Shown: positions 39,501 through 54,900 of the stretch, one piece after another
Numbering within the stretch: the first letter of the stretch is position 1
Layout of the letters: each line of letters begins with the position of its first letter
Assembly: GCF_033153115.1 (NCBI RefSeq)
Contig: NW_026889771.1
Span: 11,966,001-12,030,000, forward strand
From: Saccostrea echinata
Lineage: Eukaryota
DNA: 64,000 nt
Direction of reading: 5' to 3'
Program-made: the position numbers and the translations under genes
Notes under the pieces: generated by a model
What the model was told of the DNA's origin: nothing
Databases searched by the model: none
What the model saw: only the letters and a program-made list of their open reading frames with translations

Positions 39501-41700
39501 GAAGATGAGTAAAAAGGCGATTTTTTTCAATCTTTGCGCAACGGCTTATGCTGAAATTGTTTGCAATCTAATAATAAATAAGATTTCTTTGGAAACTGAT
39601 AAGCATTAAAGCAAAGTTTTATGTGAGTGAACAGAGGATTGAAGAGTATAGAGCAGGGAACTAACCCGTTGAAATGATCAAATAAGGAAATATCACATTA
39701 TAACAGGAAGCCGATCTGGCGGCAGCCCCAGTGTCTGTAACAGCTGAGAGAGAACAAGTGATCGATTTCACTAACCCTTACTATGATTATGCGGGTCTCC
39801 AGATCCTGATGAGCGGCACCATTGCTTCTAGTTCCATGTTTGGATTTGTGGACGTCTTTGACGGACCTGTGTGGCTGGCCTGGTTCGGTTTCCTTGGTCT
39901 GACGGGTATTATGCTGTATGTATTTCACATCTTGGTCTATCGAGTGTTTTCCAAAGAAAAAGAAAAAGATAAGGACAAGGTATTCACTATCAGCGACACG
40001 CTTTGGTTTCTTATCTCATCTATTACCATATATGGTAAGCATAAACTTACATGTTATTTCTTTACATGTAATTTTTTTTTATACATATTTTGTATTCGTT
40101 TAGAATCTTTTTGGAACTGATATACATAAATTTAATTCTTGCAGGACCAGACAAAACCCCTGGTACATTTGCAGGGCGAGTGTTAGTAATTGGATTCTGG
40201 TTCTTTTGTCAAATTATGATGGCGACTTACACAGCCAACCTTGCTGCATTTATGACATCCAAAAGACTTACAACTGAAATTCACTCCATAAACGAGCTAG
40301 CTTCTCAGAACTCTATTAAATATTCTGCTCTAGCTGGGTCAGTAAGTGAAGCCTACTTTTCCCGTATGAAAGGCATTGAAGAGAACTTCTTCGAGCTGTG
40401 GAAGAATATGAGTTACGCGAAAAGCAACGATAGAAATGACCTCACTGTGTGGGACTATCCTTTGGATGACCTTTATTCCAGAATGTTTTCTCAAATCAAT
40501 GAAACGGGATTTTTAAAGACATCTAAGGAGGGAGTGGACCGTGTTCTATCGGAAGGATTTGCATTTATCCACGAAACACCGATGATTAAGTATGAAATGG
40601 CGAAGTACTGCAATTTGATTACTGTTGGAGAGGTTTTTAGTGCAAAACCTTATGCATTTGTTCTGCAGGAAAATTCGCCTCTGAAGGAAGCATTCAATGC
40701 TAAGTATATATATTTTTATTTTTTATACACGCGTAATCGAAGATTGGGGGGGGGGGGCATATACTTTTTGACCTCCCTACCTTGACCTTTGTGTTTGATC
40801 TACATTAGTAAACAAAATTAACCTTCCCTATAATTTTTGAACGGTTGTTTCTAGGGTTTTCATATTCCAATTATTTATTTCTTGCAACAAGACCTTTCTT
40901 TGGGTACTAAAATTTTTTACCTCCTGACCTTGACCTTCGAGTTTGACCTATATTTGAAAACTTTACACTTGGTCTTGTGGTGCCATACGGGGGCATCGAT
41001 GTTTCCCAAACACATCTTGTTTCTAAATATGACTTTGTTTATGGGATGTAAAAAGGTGTTAGTGCATGTGTTGTTTTTTTAAATATACGTACAAGAAAAA
41101 TGTTGTAGGACTACAAATACAGATCAACTATTAAACATTGCAAAGTTTTCGAATTAGCTGACTGGTTTTAGAAGCTTTAGATAAATCAATGCTAGAAGCT
41201 GCAGCAGTAAAAAGTTTATTTATATACAGTTTAGTATATACTCAAATCTTAGATATTATTTTTCTATTAGAATACTCGAGCTCCAAGCCGATGCATACTT
41301 TGAACAGAGGAAGGAAGTATGGTGGTCTAAAACAGTATCTTGTCCAAAGGAAGACGATTCCACCACGGGACTTCCTTTCAAGAACCTCAGTGGTGTCTTC
41401 ATCTTAACAGGAGCGGGGTTCGCCACGGGATTTCTAATGCTTGGAATTGAATGCATTGTGTTCAGATGGAAAAAGAGAAAGGTGATTTATTATAACGATA
41501 GACAAATTAATTAATTTGATCTGGAAATCCTAAATTTGCAAGATACTTTTCTTTAACAGGAATCGCAGGAGAAACCTAAAGAGGCATACAGCAAACCTAA
41601 GTATCCCCCCCTACCCCGCCTAACATCTTTGAGATCATTGTTCTTGAAGAGCAAGAAAACAACATCAACCGTGGATTTAACTATTTCAGAGGTGGATTAA
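36526..41700 (+). CDS. IR25a/IR8a-like ionotropic receptor (co-receptor-type clade), gene C (13 exons, about 845 aa)
   Basis: Exons: 36526-36598, 36746-36895, 37133-37384, 37523-37695, 37808-37969, 38159-38242, 38376-38495, 38697-38789, 39034-39225, 39707-40034, 40145-40703, 41271-41481, 41560-41700 (2538 nt, open; ATD donors less certain). Motifs AEREQVIDFTNPYYD, ATYTANLAAF, the S2 insert ELWKNMS...VWDYP and VGEVFSAKPYA. Confidence 0.9.
39414..39506. repeat. Short palindromic MITE-like element in a gene C intron
   Basis: atcttcgctagccaagggtgacgac ... gtcgttatccttggctaacgaagat. Confidence 0.6.
40718..41022 (+). mobile_element. HINE-like remnant in a gene C intron
   Basis: tttttatac...ggggcata start, tgaccttgacc motifs, 3' end gatgtttcccaaacacatcttgtt. 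Confidence 0.5.
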
Positions 41701-42447
41701 TGATGGAGTTTAGATACTTCGCCATCATGTGCATGTAACAAGGATATTTCTATCTAAACTGAACATTGTTGATCTAATAGTTAACTGGTGCTTTTGTTTG
41801 CCCGTAGTTTGTATCGTATGGTCTATTAGCAATGACCCTTTTGTCTCATCGATTGCTTGTATTATTCAAATTTACACGCTTAATTTTAATGTTTTCTTGA
41901 TAAAAAAAAAATTCAAGTGTTTATGCATATGATGTTTTACAGCTTATAAGAATTCAAAATGAATTAATGAATTTATGTTATTTTTCAAATTTGTAAAAAT
42001 AAATACTTCAAATATAAGATATATATAGCCTGTTGTTGATAAAAATGATAATAAATTCTTGGAAGTCTCCTTTACTTTTCATCATTGCCATTGTTTCATA
42101 AAACTTGCTTCTGAATTCAGTTCACACATCAGAAATTGAATTATGACCTGTTGTTGAACGTGGAACAATGTCAGCTGCTTATACTTAACGGTTGAAGCGT
42201 TTAATTTGTAATCCAGCATATTTTTTTCTTGTTTTTTTTTATTAGTATTGATTCCTGTAGATATTGTTTAGAAAGAACAGCAGAAAAGAAAAACATTTTA
42301 AAAATGTTATGTTGCTATGTACATTGTACTACTTTGGATTGAGTTGTCTTTCTTTGACTTGTAAGTGTTTTCAGAATTTTTGGTTTTAATCGTCATTATT
42401 TTTTTTTATATTTAATACTCTAGTATAGTTTAATCCCTGGCGGGTGT

Positions 42448-42548
42448 AAAAATGCAGGGTGGCGCCTGTGGTTCAAATGGGGGAACCAACTTGGCTGATT
42501 AACGGTCAACCGTGATAAACGAAGTAACCACATAACGAAGGCCTGCAC
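42448..42548 (-). ncRNA. Vault RNA-like Pol III gene candidate V1
   Basis: GUGCAGGCCUUCGUUAUGUGGUUACUUCG...UUUGAACCACAGGCGCCACCCUGCA-UUUUU; terminal stem, TATA-like tatttatattt near -30. Confidence 0.65.
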
Positions 42549-43461
42549 ACTAATACAAAATGTAAATGAAATATAAATAAAATCGAATGTATTCTTACAC
42601 CTAATACCAAAATACTGCAATGACTGATTATCAGCTAGTAGTGCGAAAAAATAAACTTTTATAAGGATACTCCACAATGCAAAATGATGCAATTATCGTA
42701 CTTATCATAACCAGTTAGATATTGTGGTTATAAGTTATGACTGATTCTTGGACTATATCCGTTGTTTAGTGCAAACGGGTAGGAAGGAATGTTGGCGGGT
42801 AATAAACAGACAAGTAGTGGCGCTGTCCGTAATGAATCGTAAACGAGAAAGGTGCTGTATTCCATATGGTCTTCCAATACATAATGCAAGAACTTGTAAA
42901 ATCAGGTTTCCGAATTTATTATAGACGATGGTAAATAACAATCAACATGAATTTCAATAGGGACCTATATACTATAGGTTAGTATATACGTCCCTGATTT
43001 CAACAATAGCTTAACGAGTCAAATTGGGTCTTAACCAACTTGGATGTGGCCGGTAGAGCATCGGGCCTCCAAAACGAAGAAAACATAATGGACATAGCTT
43101 TTTTTCTGGGCGTAAACAATATTTCAAGTCTCAATTAAACTAACTGACTTAATTGATGGACAAGTGGTTATTTTATAGGATTGACATAAAAGAGTTTATT
43201 GAATAATTATACAAACAAAATCATTGATACGGGATTAAAAGGTCCTGAGGCATTTACACCTAATGGGTATATATTTTCCCCTCTCTTATTTATTATTTTT
43301 CTTTTTCAATCATATGTCATGTTTTTTGTTTGGTATATGTACCTCTGACCAGATTGTATATAATGTATATATGTTGTTAATGAACCCCAGGTACCAATAT
43401 TTTGGTTTGGGTGAATAAATTGAACTTGAACTTGTATCAATTCTTTTGACAAAGTCACTTA

Positions 43462-43707
43462 GCTTATTTCCCGAACGGCTACTCGCCAAAATCAACATCT
43501 AATTATCACACCCAATTAAGGGGCCCTCTAAGGGGTTCAGGTAGACTTAACTGTATGAATAAATTACCTGAATTTCAATGCATATAAACAGAACAATCTA
43601 TCAAGTCATTTTTAATTCAATATATCCTGTAAAATGTTTTTTTTTTTAATTTTTCATCTTTTTTTAAATTATATCATTTATTTTATTTATTTATTTATTT
43701 ATTTTTA

Positions 43708-43738
<31 letters not shown>

Positions 43739-44557
43739 GTTGTTAAATAATTTCTATTTCTATCTAAGCGTATACAGTTAAGGTTCAACCCTCACAATTT
43801 ATGGGTTTTATTTACTGCCACCCGGTAAATTCAAAATTTAAACATGACATTATCTTAAATTTAGACGTTTATTTGTGAATCTCTTACAATATCATTTCAT
43901 GTTTATTGTTTACTTAATTGAATTAATTTTGCCTTGATTTATGTCATTTCCTTTGAAGCAGGATTAAGACATTCCATTGGCCATTTGACATATCTTTTGC
44001 GGTTATTGATTAATTTAAACTATATACCGGGTATAATATTCAATGAAAATAAATGCAGTTTTTCTACTTTAAAACCCATAAATTGTGAGGGTTGAAATAC
44101 CTTAACTGTATACGCTTAGATAGAAATAGAAATTATTTAACAGCAAAAAATAAAAAAAAAATAAAAAAAATTAATAAATAAAATGATATAATTTTTAAAA
44201 AATGAAAAATAAAAAAAACATTTTACAGGATATATTGAATTAAAAATGACTTGATAGATTGTTCTGTTTATATGCATTGAAATTCAGGTAATTTATTCAT
44301 ACAGGTAAGTCTACCTGAACCCCTTAGAGGGCCTCTTAATTGGGTGTGATAATTAGATGTTGATTTTGGCGAGTAGCCGTTCGGGGAATAAGCCAATGGA
44401 ATGTCTTAATCCTGCTCCAAACGAAATGACATAAATCAAGGCAAAATTAATTCAAATAAACATGAAATGATATTGTTAAGAAATTCACAAATAAACGTCT
44501 AAATTTAGGATAATGTCATGTTTAAATTTTGAATTAACCGGGCGGCAGTAAATAAAA
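43462..44557. repeat. Inverted, circularly permuted duplication X-Y-spacer-X'-Y'
   Basis: X 43462-43808, Y 43806-43981, X' 44070-44393, Y' 44392-44557. Confidence 0.85.
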
Positions 44558-45102
44558 AATTTCAATTTCTTTTTAAAATAGGATTAATTATAACATTTTC
44601 TTCCTATTTGTGACTGGTTTTGTGAAGATTTTAACCACAGGTTTGATAAGGGGATTCCTTTCACTTCGGTCGGTTTCGACATCTCAGGAATTTTAGTTTG
44701 CTCTTTATTGGGTCTAATTTATTCCAATTTCTAAATTTTAAATTATTTATGCATCATATTGTTTGCAAGTGAATCGCAATCTATTCAGTAAGGTTCTCTC
44801 TAATTTTTATTTCACTCAACCCGATACATCGAAATATCAAGGCACTGTTTGGTTCAATATTATATAATATTATACTTTCTTGTAAATTAGTTGAATCTGA
44901 TTCGTCGAGAAAAATTTGTTAAAAATCACTATTACCCGCTGAATGATGAAGCCACGCCCTCCAGCGTAGCAACAGTCAACAATGCTTGACGACGGGTGAT
45001 ATTCCAAAAAATAGTGAATGCGCAGAATTTATGCGCGCACGGTTCACTGTTATATTTATTTGTATAAAACATTCAGTATAATATAATAAATATTGCATGT
45101 AG

Positions 45103-45220
45103 TTGAGTGTAACATCGAAAATTGTCACCCCTCGAAAACCATTGTCAACCTCGGCTGCGCCTCGGTTGACAATGGTTTTCTTGGGGGGGGGGGGGGGGGG
45201 GATTTTCAATGTTACACTCA
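45103..45220. repeat. Palindromic end of a non-autonomous DNA element (possibly Crypton-type)
   Basis: tgagtgtaacatcgaaaat...aaaaccattgtcaacc-tcggctgcgcctc-ggttgacaatggtttt...attttcaatgttacactca. A similar architecture occurs at 54336-54445. Confidence 0.55.
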
Positions 45221-45542
45221 ACTATACATATACTAGTATATTAATCACCAGTTGATTGACGTTCAACCCAGTTAGCCCCCCCCCCCCACCACCATCACCA
45301 CCAGAACCGCGGACGCTAGCAGCACCAGCCAAAGAATAAACTACATTACAGTATAAAAAATGAATGAAATTGACGACAACAATTTGTAAATATTTACATG
45401 CAGTGATAAAGGTGAAGATAACGAACATTGATCGATCTGAAAATTTTTAAAACAGTTCATGTTTGTGAACAGGGCATAAAACACGGAACCCTGCAACTCC
45501 AGAGGTGAGGTCATGCAGGTGCCTAGGAGGAGTAAGCATTCC

Positions 45543-45997
45543 ACAAAAAATTTAGACAACTATTAACAAAATTTAGGTTATCAAATCATATGTTGAATAT
45601 TGAAACAGGTCGATACCATAACATACCAAAGATTAATAGATTATGTACATGTAATCTCCATGATATAGAAGACGAATTTCATTTTATTTTGAAATGCCCT
45701 TTGTATATTGATTTAAGAGAGAAATTTTTGAAAAAGTATTATTATAACAAGCCTAGTGTCTTTAAATTAATTCAACTGTTAAGTTCTAATAATACTAAAG
45801 ATTTGTTAAATTTGGGCAAATTTTTGAATGCTGCCACATTGTTAAGAAAAAATAATATCGATGTATAAGACTATTTTCATGTATATATTTTTACGTTCAC
45901 TCTCTCTGTATGATTTTGTTTTCTTTTTCCATGATTGTATTATTATTCTGATGAGCCAGTTGGCTTAAGGAAATAAAGAAACTTAAACTTAAAACTT
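45543..45997 (+). mobile_element. 5'-truncated LINE 3' end inserted into a Penelope 3'-end repeat
   Basis: LNIETGRY...RLCTCN..IEDEFHFILKCPLY (C-terminal Cys/His motif of non-LTR ORF2), aataaa and (aaactt)n tail; the host motif resumes at tgtcaactggtcacaccc. Confidence 0.75.
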
Positions 45998-46456
45998 ATG
46001 TCAACTGGTCACACCCAAGCCCTCTGTATTGGTCAGGCAGAGGGAGAAATCAAATCAAATAAGACAATTGAAGGTGTAAAATATTCTTTCAAATTAAATT
46101 ATATAGGTGTATAATATGCAAAACAAATAGGGCCTAAAATATAACCCCTATAAAAACGCCGTGGTAAAAAGAGTAGCGCAATATAATTAACATTCTACGA
46201 ACATTCTACGAACAACAAATCGCATTTAATTAAAAATCAATACGATTGCATCATTTAGAGTTGTGAATTATCTCTATATATGAAAATTCATTTGATCTTT
46301 ACTCCGAAAAAAAAATATTTACATTTGATAATTTTTTTAAGGTGAACGCATTTTTCTTAACGTACTAGTAGCTGAAAATCCGTCATTGCAAATGTTGATG
46401 AGATGTTTAAATGAAGTCGACTGTGTTTATATATTTCAGTTACACCTTGTGTCAGT

Positions 46457-46559
46457 GTGCAGGCCTTAGTTATGTGGTTACTTCGTTTACTCAACAGTTG
46501 ACTGTCACTCAACCCGGTTGGTTTCCCCACTAGAACCACAGACGCCACCCTGCATTTTT
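46457..46559 (+). ncRNA. Vault RNA-like Pol III gene candidate V2
   Basis: GUGCAGGCCUUAGUUAUGUGGUUACUUCG...AGAACCACAGACGCCACCCUGCA-UUUUU; tttatatattt near -30. Confidence 0.68.
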
Positions 46560-47695
46560 ACACCCGCCAGAGATTAAACTGGGCTGCAATATTGAAAAAT
46601 TTAATAAAATAATGACCATTAAAAACAAAAATTCTGAAAACATCTATAAATCAAAGAGAGACAACTCAATCCAAAGGAGTATGTAATGTTCTAAGCATTT
46701 TCTTTAAATATGATTATCATACATGTATTTACAATGTACTTAGTAACACAGTATTTGATGTTTTTCTTCTCTGACGTTCTTTCTTAACAATATCTACGGG
46801 AAACATATTGAACAATAAAAACAAAACACACGCATATTGATAAAATGAAAACCAAAATACTAGTCCACAAATTAAACGCTTTAACCGTGAAGTACATGTA
46901 TTTATCTTCACAAATTTGAATAAAAAAATACACATATTAGGTCACAATTTCAATCCTAAAAAGCTATAAATCATTAACATATAAAAAATTTAAATTTTTT
47001 ATCTTCAAAATATTGAAAGCGTGTATTTTTTATGATAAAAAACAATCGATGATACAAAGGGTCATTAGTATTAAAACATGATTGCGACGTAAACTCTTTG
47101 TTGTCCATTCTATAGCTTATTGTTGAGCTAACTCCCCAATCAATCCATTAAGTTGCCTGAAATTGTCCATTCTTTTTGGAAAACTGTCCATTTTTTTTAA
47201 GAATGGATTTTGTTTTTTTGTTTTTTTTTTTTCAAAAAGAATGTACAGTTAAAACAGAGACATATATAAATAACGTTACTGGTTCTAACAAACAGAATGG
47301 AGAGTTACAGGTAAACTTTGGAATGTACCCAAGAGGGAAACAAATACATTAAATGCGATTTAATTTACGTGTAAATAACAACAACAAACCGTGGAGATCT
47401 AAGTTCTTTGGCATTCTGATGTGAAAAATAGAAGTTAAAATCGTCATTAATGTGTAATTCGCACACAAATACAAACCCTTCTACTAGTATCTATTTGCGA
47501 CATAATCCATTTCCTGATTAAAAATCACAGCTTATCAACTTTTGTTTATTTTTTTTATCAAAAGATGCATAAGTCGAACCGATATATTTATATTCCTTAT
47601 TGGCCATTGTCATCCCATATTTTTTGTAGAATATTCATTTATTTTTGGTGTGCAGATTTTGAACAACAAAGATGTAAACTAGCACAAAAATCAAT

Positions 47696-47745
47696 GTGCT
47701 GGCGTTAGTCATATGGCTACTTCGTTAACTCAAATGTTGATACAA
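47696..47745 (+). pseudogene. 5' half of a vault RNA-like unit (V3, truncated)
   Basis: GTGCTGGCGTTAGTCATATGGCTACTTCGTTAACTCAAATGTTGATACAA; no 3' stem or terminator. Confidence 0.5.
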
Positions 47746-48064
47746 TTTGTATAACTTGTATACTTAAATAATAAATACAGCAAACACTTTTCTACACATT
47801 ATTAGGCAACTTAAATAATCTATTGGCAACAAAAAATGAGGGGAAAATATGGGATGGAATAAAAATATTCTTTCAAGAAGAAAGTACATAGAGTTCTTCA
47901 AATATCGTTGGTGGAAAAAAATATTTCGACATTCATGTACACTATATCTGGACAGAGTTGTATTTCTTAGATAAATAGGTTTCTTTCTAAGTTTATTTTA
48001 AAACTGCTTTCATCTTTATTTTAGTTTATTGTTTCAAACAACAATTTTACCTTTCGCGGATGCC

Positions 48065-48163
48065 AAAAAATGTGCAGGATTGCGTCGGTGGTTTATGGTA
48101 GGCCAAAAGGCTGCATTGTATCAACATTTGAGTTAACGAAGTAACCACATGACTATGGCCTGC
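48065..48163 (-). ncRNA. Vault RNA-like gene candidate V4
   Basis: GCAGGCCAUAGUCAUGUGGUUACUUCG...AACCACCGACGCAAUCCUGC-ACAUUUUUU; an internal UUUU may terminate Pol III early. Confidence 0.55.
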
Positions 48164-48638
48164 TTAACGACCAACTACTAATGGTAGAGTATGTACACTA
48201 TATCTTTTAGCAAAGCTTTAAAATTATCAATTAGCAAGTTTTCTCTTTTATGATAAATAATAAATTTTCCTATATAGCTTGTCTTTCTGAATAAAGGATT
48301 TTGTTTTGTTTTGTTTTATTTTCATTTATTTATTTACTTACTTAGCGGGTGACCATTATAGATTTGATACACTGGAGCCGGAGTGATGTATTTTCGTTAC
48401 TATGATTGATCTAAAGCTAAAAAAAAAAAAAATAAATAATCCTTGCATTTTGAAATTGTGAATGTAATCTACCAGGTGATTTGTTTATAAATTCTGGAGT
48501 TCCGCAATCTGATCACACACATACCAAAATCGAGTTACCTCTCTTTAAATCCATACCAAACTTTGTAAATCTAACTTTTAGCATAACATAATCTTTCTAC
48601 TGTTGTGTTCTATTGAAAGATAAAGTCTTGCCGGGTGT

Positions 48639-48742
48639 AAAAGTACAAGGTAGCGTCTGTGGTGACAGGTGGCGACCACCTAAATTGAGCCTGATTCAAT
48701 TGTTTGAGTTAAACGAAGTAACCACATGACTAACGCCTGCAC
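48639..48742 (-). ncRNA. Vault RNA-like gene candidate V5
   Basis: GUGCAGGCGUUAGUCAUGUGGUUACUUCG...ACCACAGACGCUACCUUGUAC-UUUU; terminal stem kept via G-U pairs; internal hairpins AAUUGA/UCAAUU and AGGUGG/CCACCU. Confidence 0.68.
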
Positions 48743-49415
48743 ATGTGGTTGTATGTTAAAAATACGAGTATATCTTTGTTAATATTCAAAATTTGCTCTA
48801 AAAATAAAATAATTTTCAATTTCTAAATAAGTGAGATGACAATGGACAATTAGAAATATGATTATATCGGTTCGATTTATGTATCTTTTTACATAAAAAA
48901 AAAAAAAATGAATAAAAGTTAGTGATAAAGGACTTTAATTGGACTTTACCTTTCTAGGTGGCAAATAAATGAAGAGACATAAGATTTCATATTTACACAT
49001 TAACTGATTAATGATCGATGATTAATTCAGATTTATTTTTCAGACCAGATTCCCATATAACTCATCCATTATTATTTTTAAGACTTATTGACTTAATTTT
49101 TCTTAACTATACTTCGAATTCAGCATTTCATCAAAATACCATTTTATATATGATTTCAGAATATAAGAATTCAAGTCCACGATCACCACAACATTGCCCT
49201 TAGTAAATTAATTAATTTATTTCATTTTCAATGGTAAAGTACTCGATGATTTCTTTTAAAGCCTCTTTAACGATATTTTCATTTATTTCAAATAATATTG
49301 GATTATAAACATGCATTTATTATACACTCTTGGAGAAGCAGTCTGGCGTATTTCGATTTTTCACAAAAAAGTTGTTTTATGATTTATTTCGAAGATTCTC
49401 GACCTAGCGGGTGCT

Positions 49416-49514
49416 AAAACTGCAGGATAGCATCAGTGGTTGTTATGGAAACACCTACATTTGTAATCAGACAATTGTTGAAGTTAACAAAGTAATCACA
49501 CGACCAAGCCTACA
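49416..49514 (-). ncRNA. Vault RNA-like gene candidate V6 (degenerate)
   Basis: UGUAGGCUUGGUCGUGUGAUUACUUUG...AACCACUGAUGCUAUCCUGCAG-UUUU. Confidence 0.45.
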
Positions 49515-50623
49515 TATATATTAAAGGTTTAAACAACGTATTCATGAAAACCATATAATGACAAGTCCACTCAAACCCACTAAAATATGTTACTGAACAT
49601 ATTCCGTGTATTTAAATGTTGTAAAATTTATATAGAAAAATCCAAAAGTTTTTTTTTTTTAATGATTCGGATGTTATTGTGTGTGGAACAAGTACTAACA
49701 TGCATGCATGCATACTATTTTAAAGAATGGTCGGGTTTAAAATGCGGGAAATTTGGGGATAGATTATTATCAAGGTTTCTAGCTTTTTACTTATTTCTTT
49801 ACATTACATATTTTTTAACGTATTTTTTTTAAACTCAAAGGCTCAGGAGCTTGAATTTTTCTGATCGAACTTTTTTCTGTCAACTTTTCACGTTTTCAAC
49901 TTCTCGAGAACCATGGGCCAATTTCAACAAAACTTGTCACAAAGCATCCTTGGATGAAGGGAATTCAGATTTGTTCATATGGAGGATCACGTTCTATTTT
50001 AAAATGTATATAAGGGGAGAAAATTAAGAAATAATGAAATTTTGTGGTATCATTTAAAAATCTTCTTTAAAATTAATATCAAAAAATGATTGCTTTTATA
50101 ACCACCTGTTAGAAGACGATTATTTTTCTTACCATTGAATCAAGATTTGTTTTTTTCCTTTAAAAGTATATTTAGAAGTGACTAAATTAAAAAAAAAATC
50201 AAGGCTAGGCATAAGGCTAGATATAAACTTTTTTCAGATTAAGTTCACCAAAATTGTTTCTAATTCTATATACTAGTAGTTAAATCAGTTGTTTTATTCA
50301 CCAATATTTCAAATGCTATATGTTCCAAAACTTGATACCGGTATATTTGTATTTATAACTCTAACAGTTGGTTATAAAAGCAATTTTTTTTTTAATTTAT
50401 TTTCTTTTATTTATTTTTGGGAAAAAAATTTAACCTTCCAATTTTGAAACCCGTCCCCCCTTTTCAACTTTCTTATCCGAGATGTTATATCGAACAAGGT
50501 CTTTGTACCTAAACTATGTTATCTATAATATGGAAAAAGGGACCTATTGTTATTATATATATAGAATTCTACGAATATATCTAGCTTTTTTATCTACAAA
50601 AAGTTAACCTTTTGATCATTTTG

Positions 50624-51982: not shown

Positions 51983-54900
51983 TTAATTTTCAGGTGCTGA
52001 CATTGAATCCAGTTCTTCTGTAATGGGTTCATATGCTGATTTTGGTTTTGTTTCTGCATGCAGAGATTCAATTTGTGAGTCAGTCAGTTTTTTAATTGCA
52101 TCATAAAATTCAGAAAAATCAACATAGGCCTCTACTCTGCCATTTTCATCCAGTTCCAACTTGTTGGGATTGTAAAACCTAGTGGGAAATCTCATTTCTC
52201 CACTACTCTGTGTAGAGGACTCTGTGCTTGTGTAGGTGTGGTTGGTTTCATTGAAAGTGGATTCCAAAGTGGATGAGAATGTGTCACGAGGTGGTGTCTG
52301 AGCTGGGGTGGGAGTTCCTGGTGTGGAAGATCCTCCAGATCCACTGTGGTTCTCCACCCTCTCTGCGGTGCTGAGGTTTGGTATAGTCACTGTGGGTGGC
52401 ATGTTTGTTGGGCGGGGACTGTAAAATGGCACGGACACTGGGTGATAGGCCCCACCAGCAGTTGGGCTGCTTATTGCATTGGCAAGAGGGTAATTAAAGT
52501 TTCTCACTAACAGTGTAATGTCTCCACGTTTTTGACAAATCTGTTTCATTTCTGGCGTTCCTCCAATGAAGGCATCGTGGTGAATTCGGACGACTTTATC
52601 TACCACTGCCTGGGCTACACCATTAAGTGTAGACTGCTGAGAAAATTCGGCTGCCACCATTCTGGCGATGTCAATATTCACACGATCTGTGTTGGTTGCA
52701 GCTTGTAAGGCCTGGTAGAGGCCATCTGACATGATGATCAGAAAACTGGGACGGCTTCCAATCTCAATGCTTCCATGAACATAAGGGTCAGCAATCACAG
52801 GCTCTCTTATTGCATTTCTAAAGCACAGATAAAAAAAAATATCAATTACAAAATATATCTGCAGAGAAAATCAATGCATAATTAAAATATTCATTTTAAA
52901 CTACAGAGAGTAAGTTTAACACCGAGGAAAACATTCATTCTTATGTAATAGTTTTCCTGCAAATGTGAAAGAATGAGGGGAATAAGCATAAAATAATGGT
53001 TTGTTTGATGTACATGTACTCTTAACACTTGTATATATACCAGTAGGTACATATAAAATCAGCACTGAAAATAATGAAATAAAAAATAATCTATACACCA
53101 CACAGGTGTATCTATTAACCTGTCTATTGCCCTCTAAATTTTGCAAATTGGCTGCCAAAAGAAATATTGAAGGCAGGCACATGACATCTGTTATCCAGTG
53201 ACAAAGTGTCATTCTGGTCCAAGGCAAAACAAAAATTTATCTAACTTACCGGAGAGTCTCGATGTCCTTGTATCCCCCTTTCACATGGTAGTCCCCTATA
53301 CACCTGGTGCTGTCTGAACTCCCCACCCTTCTGTGTTGTTTGAGCTTCTCCACATCCACTCCTAAATGAGACAGTCTGTTAAGCTCCTCCTCATTGGAGA
53401 GAGAATGGTCCACAGAGAGTTGGATTACCTTAAAAACGCCACCCTCATCTGTCTGACAGAATAAGGCTCTTGTGTCCCCTAAAATTTGATAAAAATTTTA
53501 ATCTAAATAATAGATTTTAACAAATGGTGCTCTTTTTAATTTCTCTACATTTTTTTTCTAAATTAACCTACCAACATTTGCCACATATAATTTGCATTTA
53601 TACACCAAAGCTACAGTTGCAGTTGTTCCCCCTGTTATTTCCCTCTCCAGATCATCCAGTTTCTTCATAACATCTGGAAACTGATTTAAGGCCTCATAGT
53701 GCCCTATACCCTGTGGTAATAACAGTCAAATATTGAGCAAGAATGTCTCACAAAAAACAGAAAAATTTATTTTTCAGATGATATTAGTTATTAAATGTCT
53801 TTAAATACCACAGCTGAATTGCCTTTTTATTCAAAAATCTACATTAAACATCAGAATATTAAAACGCTGTTAGAAAGATCGATTTGGAAAAATGCTTCAT
53901 TGTGTACACAATTCAATACATTAGTTCATATTTCCTTATTTTGTACATGACTGTATTTGTTGATAAAACAAGCATTTAAGCAAAATACATGGCAATGATG
54001 GTATATTATTATCCTACAGTCAATCTTATTGGTTAAGAGCATGTCATGTGCAGGGAGATAATTTGTGATGTCTCCCTCACGTGCAGGATGACAACTGTGT
54101 TGTCTCCCTTTAGATAAAATAAAATGTCACAAGAGAGATAACTCTGATTTCATTAAAATGTATGTGGGATCCGTAAACAATAAATTTCAATGGTGACGGC
54201 AAAGTTGTCTGTTGACGTATTGTGAAAGTACAGAATCAGAGCAGTGGATAAAGAACACAACAGATATTTTATACTCTATTTTGTGAAATTTAGATCCTTC
54301 AGGATTCTTCATGATAATAAAACTATGTGGACTTTTTAGTAGGGAGACATCACAAATTATCAGGTCTGAGTGAGGTTGTCACCCTTGGAAACTAGCACCC
54401 TTGAGTGACAACTCTACCAATAATTTGTGATGTCTCCTTACTAACAGTCCATAACTGTATATTGTTATCAGCAATTATTCAAAATTTTCCATAAAATGGG
54501 ACAATGGCAGAGACGTAATGAAATTTCAATAAATGATTTTTGTGCTACTATCAGAATTTGTTTTTACTGGTATTCTTTGAACAACATCCTGATCCAATGA
54601 CAACAATTTTTCTTGACATATACCTCTGGCAACTGTAGCTGTATTGTTGTTTTCTCTGCAAAAATGTGATCAATAGACTCAAAGAAACTTTTCTCAACAG
54701 CTATAAATGCCTGCAAAATAAAAGTGGAAAAGAAATTTCATATTATTTGTATGATATTATCTCTGCACAACACCCACTACACATTTTGAAAAGTGGCAAT
54801 ATTAATTTTCCTTTAAAAAAAAAATCCAGGCGATACAATGCAAGTACCTGGTTCAGAAGATCTTTTATATCCTCATCAGTTGTCTTTCCTGACAGTTGCC

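Follow-up and report, generated by a model that had tools for sequence, protein, structure and literature searches.

We find that Saccostrea echinata very probably carries a cluster of vault RNA (vtRNA) genes in the window analysed here (the whole stretch of 64,000 nt), with an ionotropic glutamate receptor gene on one side and TAB1 on the other. We read the cluster as RF00006 paralogues, comprising four well-preserved genes, one degenerating copy and one pseudogene that arose by local segmental duplications, and put the probability of this reading at about 0.85. The vault RNA identity proposed in an earlier note on this DNA is supported by Rfam Vault scores, a covarying panhandle, a box A followed by GGUUACUUCG, a closing T-run and a low, clustered copy number.

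Units of the cluster and their family assignment

All six related units described earlier were found at their positions, five of them full-length (V1, V2, V4, V5 and V6) and one decayed (V3), each of about 100 nt. The glutamate receptor exons lie at 39731-40785 on the plus strand (Pfam Lig_chan, E 5e-17), and the last exon of TAB1 (TAK1-binding protein 1) at 51983-52798 on the minus strand; this TAB1 neighbourhood, also claimed previously, is borne out by a weak Pfam PP2C match and by relatives named TAK1-binding protein 1 or TAB1. A search for tRNA genes within the window found none. For the core GTGGTTACTTCG, with up to two mismatches allowed, 2.3 occurrences would be expected in the window; there are nine, a count reached in 0 of 100 shuffles.

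Against the Rfam Vault covariance model (RF00006, gathering score 34 bits), the full-length genes V2 (46457-46559, plus strand, an inverted paralogue of V1), V5 (48639-48742, minus strand) and V1 (42448-42548, minus strand, about 97 nt plus T5) score 44.1, 42.1 and 40.4 bits, respectively, all over the gathering score. V4 (48065-48165, minus strand, T6 terminator), matched over 48068-48165, lies marginally under it at 33.1 bits (E 4e-4 in the 12 kb searched), and neither V6 (49416-49515, minus strand) nor V3 (47696-47801, plus strand) matched RF00006 at E up to 10 in the same 12 kb, such that the Infernal check suggested by the earlier note succeeds for three units, narrowly misses a fourth and fails for two. 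The Vault matches keep E values of 5e-6 to 6e-5 with the whole 923-Mb genome as search space. Moreover, base-for-base agreement with the Vault consensus is seen in the signature GGUUACUUCG (10 nt) as well as in the 3' CCAC-GACGC segment.

These matches also bear on the idea that the units are another kind of panhandle Pol III RNA, for instance a Y RNA-like partner of Ro60 paralogues, that came to match Vault by convergence. Y RNAs and vault RNAs alike are panhandle Pol III transcripts that TROVE proteins bind, and the genome contains about 25 intronless Ro60-like genes; however, Vault was the sole Rfam family matched at E up to 10 and no Y RNA match was seen (12 kb searched), which together with the base-for-base agreement just described makes this reading very unlikely.

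Within the vault RNA cluster the state of the individual units differs. The segment UAGUYAUGUGGUUACUUCG (box A and then GGUUACUUCG) is present in V1, V2, V4 and V5 and mutated in V3 and V6. V6 aligns with the family, its box A region reads GTGATTACTTTG, and it folds no better than shuffled sequences (z -0.34). V3 had been described as a 5' half only, and indeed its 5' half is recognisable and its 3' half AT-mutated, but our family model R1 aligns it over its full length (23 bits, E 1e-3, GC 0.30). V1, V2, V4 and V5 are four well-preserved genes, V6 is degenerating and V3 is a pseudogene. An inverted segmental duplication connects the V1 arm (41960-42575) with a partner arm (46430-46944) that carries V2; inverted repeats between the two arms (I2, I4, I9, I10, I15 and I16) show 77-90% complementarity, V1 and V2 share 86% identity overall, and their homology extends about 500 nt into one flank. 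The 5' half of V3 is complementary to V4 at 90% (inverted repeat I12). Local segmental duplications, both inverted and direct, would account for the origin of the cluster.

Constraint on the RNA ends

The RNA of each intact unit (about 97-101 nt) folds to the vtRNA panhandle, with a terminal stem of 7 bp, an inner stem of 8 bp and a freely evolving centre, and single-sequence folding also yields this panhandle (z -2.2 for V1, -2.8 for V4 and -3.6 for V5, where 0 of 200 shuffles were as stable). We compared 20 sequences, including eight foreign vtRNAs from metagenome contigs that are all over the Rfam cut-off; the metagenome pattern matches L077, L079 and L084 had no Vault match and were dropped. 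In this set the panhandle stems are 95.3% paired, against 37-50% with the partners slid, and two-sided compensatory changes are found at 6 of the 15 pairs, with pair position 5 occurring as A-U, C-G and U-A and pair position 23 as U-A and G-C. The earlier claim that the end pairing survives substitution is confirmed by these compensatory changes across alignments, and within the cluster's own subfamily the stems likewise stay paired through substitutions. Among paralogues, the 30 nt at the 5' end are 76% identical and the 30 nt at the 3' end 72%, but the centre reaches only 52% and the flanks 51% (random 46-48%); for V1 and V2 the corresponding values are 97% and 90% (5' and 3' ends), 77% (centre) and 68-73% (flanks). 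Judged from sequence comparison, the RNA ends appear to be constrained, and the centre and flanks stand at random identity among paralogues.

Genomic distribution

A covariance model of the family finds 18 places in the genome, in three clusters and as singles, and a search with the 19-nt box A pattern gave 16 places (5 with a control pattern); with the V2 sequence as query there are only four, all within the cluster. Two pattern matches, C1:7122712 and C32:593388, had no Vault match and were treated as chance. The genome-wide count that had been suggested as a check therefore comes to 16-18 places in 923 Mb, clustered and not dispersed in hundreds. Since the genome holds only about 18 such genes, the units are not a SINE, and we consider it extremely unlikely that they are tRNA-derived SINE or MITE copies whose likeness to vault RNA comes merely via a shared box A. 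Some vtRNA units, in the genome as well as in metagenome contigs, do pass the Rfam tRNA threshold over the box A-box B core, and the 12-mer TTTTACACCCGC that follows the units also occurs in a dispersed MITE about 360 bp long, as part of its terminal inverted repeat, this terminal repeat being the source of the genome-wide excess of the post-terminator motif described below. However, neither further MITE homology nor a second terminal repeat was found within 1.2 kb of any unit, on which ground a MITE carrying or flanking the units was rejected; the units have no poly-A or simple-repeat tail; and the flank homology of V1 and V2 fits segmental duplication, not insertion.

The cluster in the window is not the genome's main vtRNA locus; a more canonical cluster, with at least eight units, lies on contig C2 (30.96-31.07 Mb). 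The two clusters have in common the box A region, the 3' CUGAYGC segment and the stems, in which compensatory changes are seen. In contrast to the window cluster, which lacks a recognisable box B, the C2 units have a perfect one (GGTTCGAATCC), and they also carry conserved upstream TTTAAATACCC, TGACGTCAC (CRE-like) and TATATTATTA elements and a TATA-like box. Their terminators are long (T5-T12) and without a ACACCCGC motif, whereas the window cluster has T4-T6 followed by ACACCCGC. The subfamily of the window cluster occurs again 2.35 Mb away, where its conserved parts are likewise found. It may represent a second, diverged lineage alongside the canonical C2 genes, with a status like that of human vtRNA2-1 beside the vtRNA1 cluster.

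Promoter elements and the post-terminator motif

Box B is the classical internal promoter element of vtRNA genes. No box B (GGTTCGANNCC) is recognisable in the cluster, where we found only degenerate candidates (GGTTGGTTCCCC or TTTGAACC), and the box B assignment made earlier is uncertain in that MAFFT instead aligns GGTTGGTTCCCC of V1 and V2 with the canonical box B of the C2 family. In the accepted vtRNAs of Fasciola box B is barely conserved (PMC8824774), so that it is typical of vtRNA genes and not strictly defining. Upstream, 14 of 19 units (background 16%) have a TATA-like element between -42 and -18; the TATA-like run near -30 previously reported for V1 and V2 is there and in most other units, and intact units begin about 30 nt downstream of it. 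A T4-T6 run closes the units, for a unit length of 97-104 nt. RNA polymerase III would be expected to transcribe them, and in this subfamily it probably leans on the upstream TATA-like element more than on box B.

Right after the short T-run stands a GC-rich motif, ACACCCGC, which is conserved in every full-length copy of the subfamily (9/9 units, compared with 0/9 others and a background of 0.25%). It follows V1 at 42440-42447, V5 at 48631-48638 and V6 at 49407-49414, all on the minus strand, and V2 at 46560-46567 on the plus strand, with a variant CATCCGC after V4 (48056-48062, minus strand); it is absent from the eight foreign vtRNAs of the metagenome contigs. It is conceivable, if rather doubtful, that the contig-C22 units form a vtRNA subfamily that does without box B and relies on the upstream TATA-like box together with ACACCCGC after a minimal T4-T5 run, in which ACACCCGC might either provide terminator context or, much like the downstream box B of yeast SNR6, be a promoter element displaced downstream. 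If true, animal Pol III genes would have in ACACCCGC a control element not described before.

The promoter elements also bear on regarding the whole cluster as non-functional vtRNA pseudogenes, segmentally duplicated from the functional C2 lineage and no longer transcribed. Box B is degenerate in 6/6 units while C2 has a perfect box B with an upstream CRE-like TGACGTCAC and a TATA-like box, V3 and V6 are visibly decayed, and the T-runs are short. We nevertheless think wholesale loss of function improbable: centres and flanks have diverged to random identity, yet the end domains have stayed 72-76% identical, the young pair V1/V2 behaves likewise, and substitutions within the subfamily have left the stems paired. 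Additional support for retained genes comes from the persistence of this subfamily, conserved parts included, at the locus 2.35 Mb away, and from TATA-like boxes kept near -30.

Partners, known relatives and significance

The earlier note's statement that bivalves possess MVP is supported by the MVP gene of the S. echinata genome, in which the MVP repeats (Vault, Vault_2) are present. The genome also has a multi-exon TEP1-like gene with TROVE, DUF4062 and STAND NTPase P-loop regions; the TEP1_N repeat of vertebrate TEP1 (PF05386, 29 positions) had no match in the genome, which we do not take as absence of TEP1. By our reading, the TROVE-domain protein encoded by the TEP1-like gene would bind the RNA via its conserved end domains, a fraction of the RNA would ride in vault particles built from MVP, and the remainder would act free in the cytoplasm, as in mammals.

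The claim that vault RNAs had no molluscan record did not hold: RF00006 already includes vtRNAs of the mollusc Lottia gigantea, along with the annelid Helobdella robusta and the flatworm Macrostomum lignano, and five expressed vtRNAs have been reported for Fasciola, four of whose five genes fall within 133 kb (PMC8824774). Because these RF00006 members and Fasciola vtRNAs are published, lophotrochozoan and molluscan vault RNAs are on record. Like the oyster units, the vtRNAs of Lottia (taken from description), Helobdella, Macrostomum and Fasciola hepatica are 80-150 nt long, form a panhandle and have a box A and then TTACTTCG as well as a T-run, and Fasciola and the window cluster are alike in having clustered genes with a weak box B. 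The host here, unlike those of the lophotrochozoan vtRNAs on record, is a bivalve, and no description of a bivalve vtRNA was found in the literature searched.

Similarly to human vtRNA1-1, 1-2, 1-3 and vtRNA2-1 (nc886), the oyster genes form a small Pol III multigene family of RNAs of about 100 nt in which a second, diverged locus exists besides the main cluster, and the oyster GGUUACUUCG, identical to the Rfam consensus, is a further likeness to the human vtRNAs. Human vtRNA genes have known upstream TATA and CRE elements (PMC8287541); TATA-like elements are common to human and oyster, and a CRE-like element is found also in the oyster C2 cluster. The two species differ in number (4 versus about 18 genes), in the oyster neighbours (the glutamate receptor gene and TAB1) and in the unrecognisable box B of the window cluster.

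Since the family model finds the units already and molluscan members are on record, we regard the annotation as sound and not as a discovery; likewise the known distribution of vault RNAs is unchanged, because the public Rfam model detects the units and has molluscan, annelid and flatworm members. Two modest points appear to be new, namely a divergent subfamily without a recognisable box B and a conserved ACACCCGC after its short T-run, both as suggested by sequence. The subfamily-specific motif after the terminator is the only point that might repay experiment. Recognisable vault RNA genes are now seen in a bivalve as well, where a single oyster genome has about 18 in two clearly diverged subfamilies, and the oyster set provides candidates for small-RNA work on vaults, extracellular vesicles and stress responses.

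Identity and number of the units

All six vault RNA-like units (V1-V6) that an earlier note had placed at 42.4-49.5 kb are present in the window sequence, and we consider them members of the vault RNA (vtRNA) family with a probability of about 0.85. At curated thresholds the only Rfam matches in the whole window were three to RF00006 (Vault; gathering score 34 bits), namely V2 (46457-46559, + strand, 44.1 bits), V5 (48639-48742, - strand, 42.1 bits) and V1 (42448-42548, - strand, 40.4 bits), and in a permissive scan of 12 kb V4 (48068-48165, - strand) followed at 33.1 bits (E 4e-4). Neither scan reported an Rfam match for V6 or V3. V6 is alignable to the other units over its entire length, and V3 (47696-47801, + strand, GC 30%), previously taken for only a 5' half, is instead a decayed copy, as a family covariance model from whose building it was excluded aligned it over its full length (23 bits, E 1e-3). 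With as many as two mismatches permitted, the window contains 9 occurrences of the core GTGGTTACTTCG, where 2.3 would be expected.

We searched the 923 Mb host genome (425 contigs), scoring best candidates only, such that all copy counts are lower bounds. The V2 sequence was found in four places only, all within the window cluster. A degenerate box A pattern of 19 nt, searched with one mismatch allowed, gave 16 places (5 for the reversed control), the Rfam Vault model at least 10, and a covariance model derived from 16 units at least 18. These form three clusters plus singles on contigs C30 and C1. Besides the window cluster (contig C22, 12.008-12.016 Mb), C22 carries three units and one decayed copy at 9.635-9.659 Mb (9634988-9659094; loci L006, L024, L033, L043), which lie 2.35 Mb away and belong to the window units' subfamily. 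The third cluster, on C2 at 30.96-31.07 Mb (30963100-31072466; L001-L004, L008, L010, L032), comprises eight or more units, which share one strand, score up to 51 bits on the Rfam Vault model and are more canonical than the window units. Plain DNA and pattern searches would have revealed a dispersed repeat despite the lower-bound counts.

Structure and covariation

V1, V2, V4 and V5 each adopt a predicted panhandle fold (z-scores -2.1 to -3.6), and no such fold was obtained for V6 (z -0.34). When pairs were counted on alignments over the terminal 7-bp stem and the inner 4+4-bp stem, 95.0% of cells were paired in 16 units of the host genome, compared with 37-48% when the 3' partners were slid by 1-3 columns. 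A further 8 vtRNA genes, from other marine organisms and in three sequence groups, came from public metagenome contigs scanned with a pattern, and each scores 40-49 bits on the Rfam Vault model. With these added pairing was 95.3% (37-50% slid) and 6 of 15 pairs showed two-sided changes, including position 4 (C-G, U-G, U-A), position 5 (A-U, C-G, U-A), position 6 (G-C, A-U) and position 23 (U-A, G-C). The compensatory GUGG/CCAC for GCGG/CCGC to which the earlier note drew attention is a change of this same kind. On three contigs of a marine eukaryote, L078 (metagenome contig Ga0224511_10004085), L083 and L085, vtRNA genes in alternation with identical tRNA genes make up a repeated array. The core from box A to box B passes the Rfam tRNA threshold in several of these vtRNAs, and also in the oyster unit at L032:1508-1581.

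Promoter elements and the post-terminator motif

Of 19 units, 14 have a TATA-like element at -42 to -18, a feature of 16% of random 25-nt windows. The C2 units possess a perfect box B (GGTTCGAATCC), conserved upstream TTTAAATACCC and CRE-like TGACGTCAC and TATATTATTA, and a conserved CCCTATCT 17-32 nt past the terminator; human vtRNA genes, too, are known to have TATA and CRE elements upstream (PMC8287541). No box B was recognisable in the window units, either among the candidates proposed earlier (AUUUGAACC, ACUAGAACC) or in GGTTGGTTCCCC, which MAFFT set under the C2 box B, all being poor matches. Fasciola vtRNAs are likewise reported to show hardly any conservation of box B (PMC8824774). We infer that Pol III would transcribe the window units by way of the TATA-like box and box A.

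Directly past the short T-run, at 42440-42447, 46560-46567, 48631-48638, 49407-49414 and 48056-48062, the window units carry a GC-rich motif (ACACCCGC or a variant). The pattern CA[CT]C[CG]G[CG], mostly ACACCCGC, lies within 5 bases of the T-run in 9/9 full-length units of the C22 subfamily, those of the second C22 cluster included, and in one decayed copy, and in 0/9 other genome units and 0/8 metagenome vtRNAs, against a background of 0.25% for a motif defined after its sighting. Motif-bearing units have T4-T6 runs followed by 6-7 G+C per eight bases; in the other vtRNA families the run is T5-T12, frequently backed up by a second one, and AT-rich DNA comes next. Our best guess is that the motif may strengthen a minimal terminator by giving it GC-rich surroundings, for which Xenopus 5S is a precedent. 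A more novel alternative is that it might act as a downstream promoter element.

Genome-wide, TTTTRCACCCGC occurs 165 times (73 for the control, about 2x). The excess comes from a dispersed MITE of ~360 bp (L048, L051, L052, L054-L056, L058-L063, L065 and others, e.g. L055:1176-1551), where the sequence makes up the inner portion of the terminal repeat. The terminal inverted repeats of this MITE, ATACCGTATAGCGGG...TTTAGCGGGTGTAAAA, include a 12-mer identical to that of the post-terminator motif, in which another repeat family (L047, L057, L066, L068, L071) also terminates. At no unit did we find further homology to the MITE beyond the motif, or a second repeat nearby.

Growth of the cluster and sequence constraint

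Flanking the cluster, which lies in an interval of ~11 kb, are an ionotropic glutamate receptor gene (Lig_chan, + strand), with exons ending at 40785, and a PP2C-type gene (- strand), with its last exon at 51983-52798. Relatives of the latter are named TAK1-binding protein 1 or TAB1, the neighbour correctly named in the earlier note. V1 and V2 lie within an inverted segmental duplication with homology extending ~500 nt downstream of the genes and only ~30 nt upstream, and V3 has its upstream sequence in common with V5 and its 5' half in common with V4, so that the cluster grew by local duplication, not by insertion. Between V1 and V2, at 43446-44557, is a large inverted repeat whose arms, of up to 202 nt, are almost perfectly matched (95% complementary); it resembles a foldback or MITE-like element. 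At 45090-45234 a long hairpin surrounds a run of ~20 G; it is matched by plant miRNA models only below threshold and is probably a small inverted-repeat element.

Among eight full-length C22-subfamily units mean identity is 76% in the first and 72% in the last 30 nt, 52% in the centre and 51% in the flanks, with unrelated sequence at 46-48% by the same alignment. For V1 and V2, a young pair, identity is 97% and 90% at the ends, 77% in the centre and 68-73% in the flanks. Similar to known vtRNAs, these units thus combine conserved ends with a free centre, which argues that some copies at least have been under selection since duplication.

Partner proteins

As the earlier note anticipated for a bivalve, the host genome has a major vault protein (MVP) gene with Vault and Vault_2 repeats (C30, 22.877 Mb), with weaker exons on C3. 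TROVE matches numbered 29, and all but one locus are intronless Ro60-like genes, ~25 in number, with TROVE and Ro60 vWA domains and ~500 aa, partly in local clusters (C40, C83, C72, C53 and others, e.g. L016:1465-2955), several with internal stops. Such paralogues carry the Ro60-like name in other bivalves too, and one Ro60-like protein of the host assembly shows 100% identity to an NCBI protein of Saccostrea echinata, the next closest being one of Ostrea edulis at 87%, which identifies the host as an oyster. The sole multi-exon TROVE gene (C1 44.14-44.152 Mb; 44137000-44152100, minus strand; L045, L046) has TROVE exons, then DUF4062, then a STAND NTPase P-loop exon, an arrangement that we take to match TEP1, so that this gene is a candidate TEP1 orthologue.

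Relation to known vault RNAs

The literature we searched holds no description of bivalve vtRNAs, and one summary covers more than 100 predicted deuterostome genes and a Trypanosoma brucei vtRNA (PMC10491885). A study that reported five vtRNAs of Fasciola hepatica, all expressed and most of them clustered, used box A and TTACTTCG of the Lottia gigantea and Helobdella robusta vtRNAs from Rfam RF00006, and compared these with Macrostomum lignano and deuterostome vtRNAs (PMC8824774). The earlier premise that vault RNAs had not been described from molluscs therefore fails, since RF00006 includes Lottia gigantea and finds window units unaided. The units extend a known family within a phylum from which it is already on record, and are not new in kind. 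They nevertheless constitute a genuine oyster vault RNA paralogue cluster, rightly recognised as a vault RNA locus in the earlier note.
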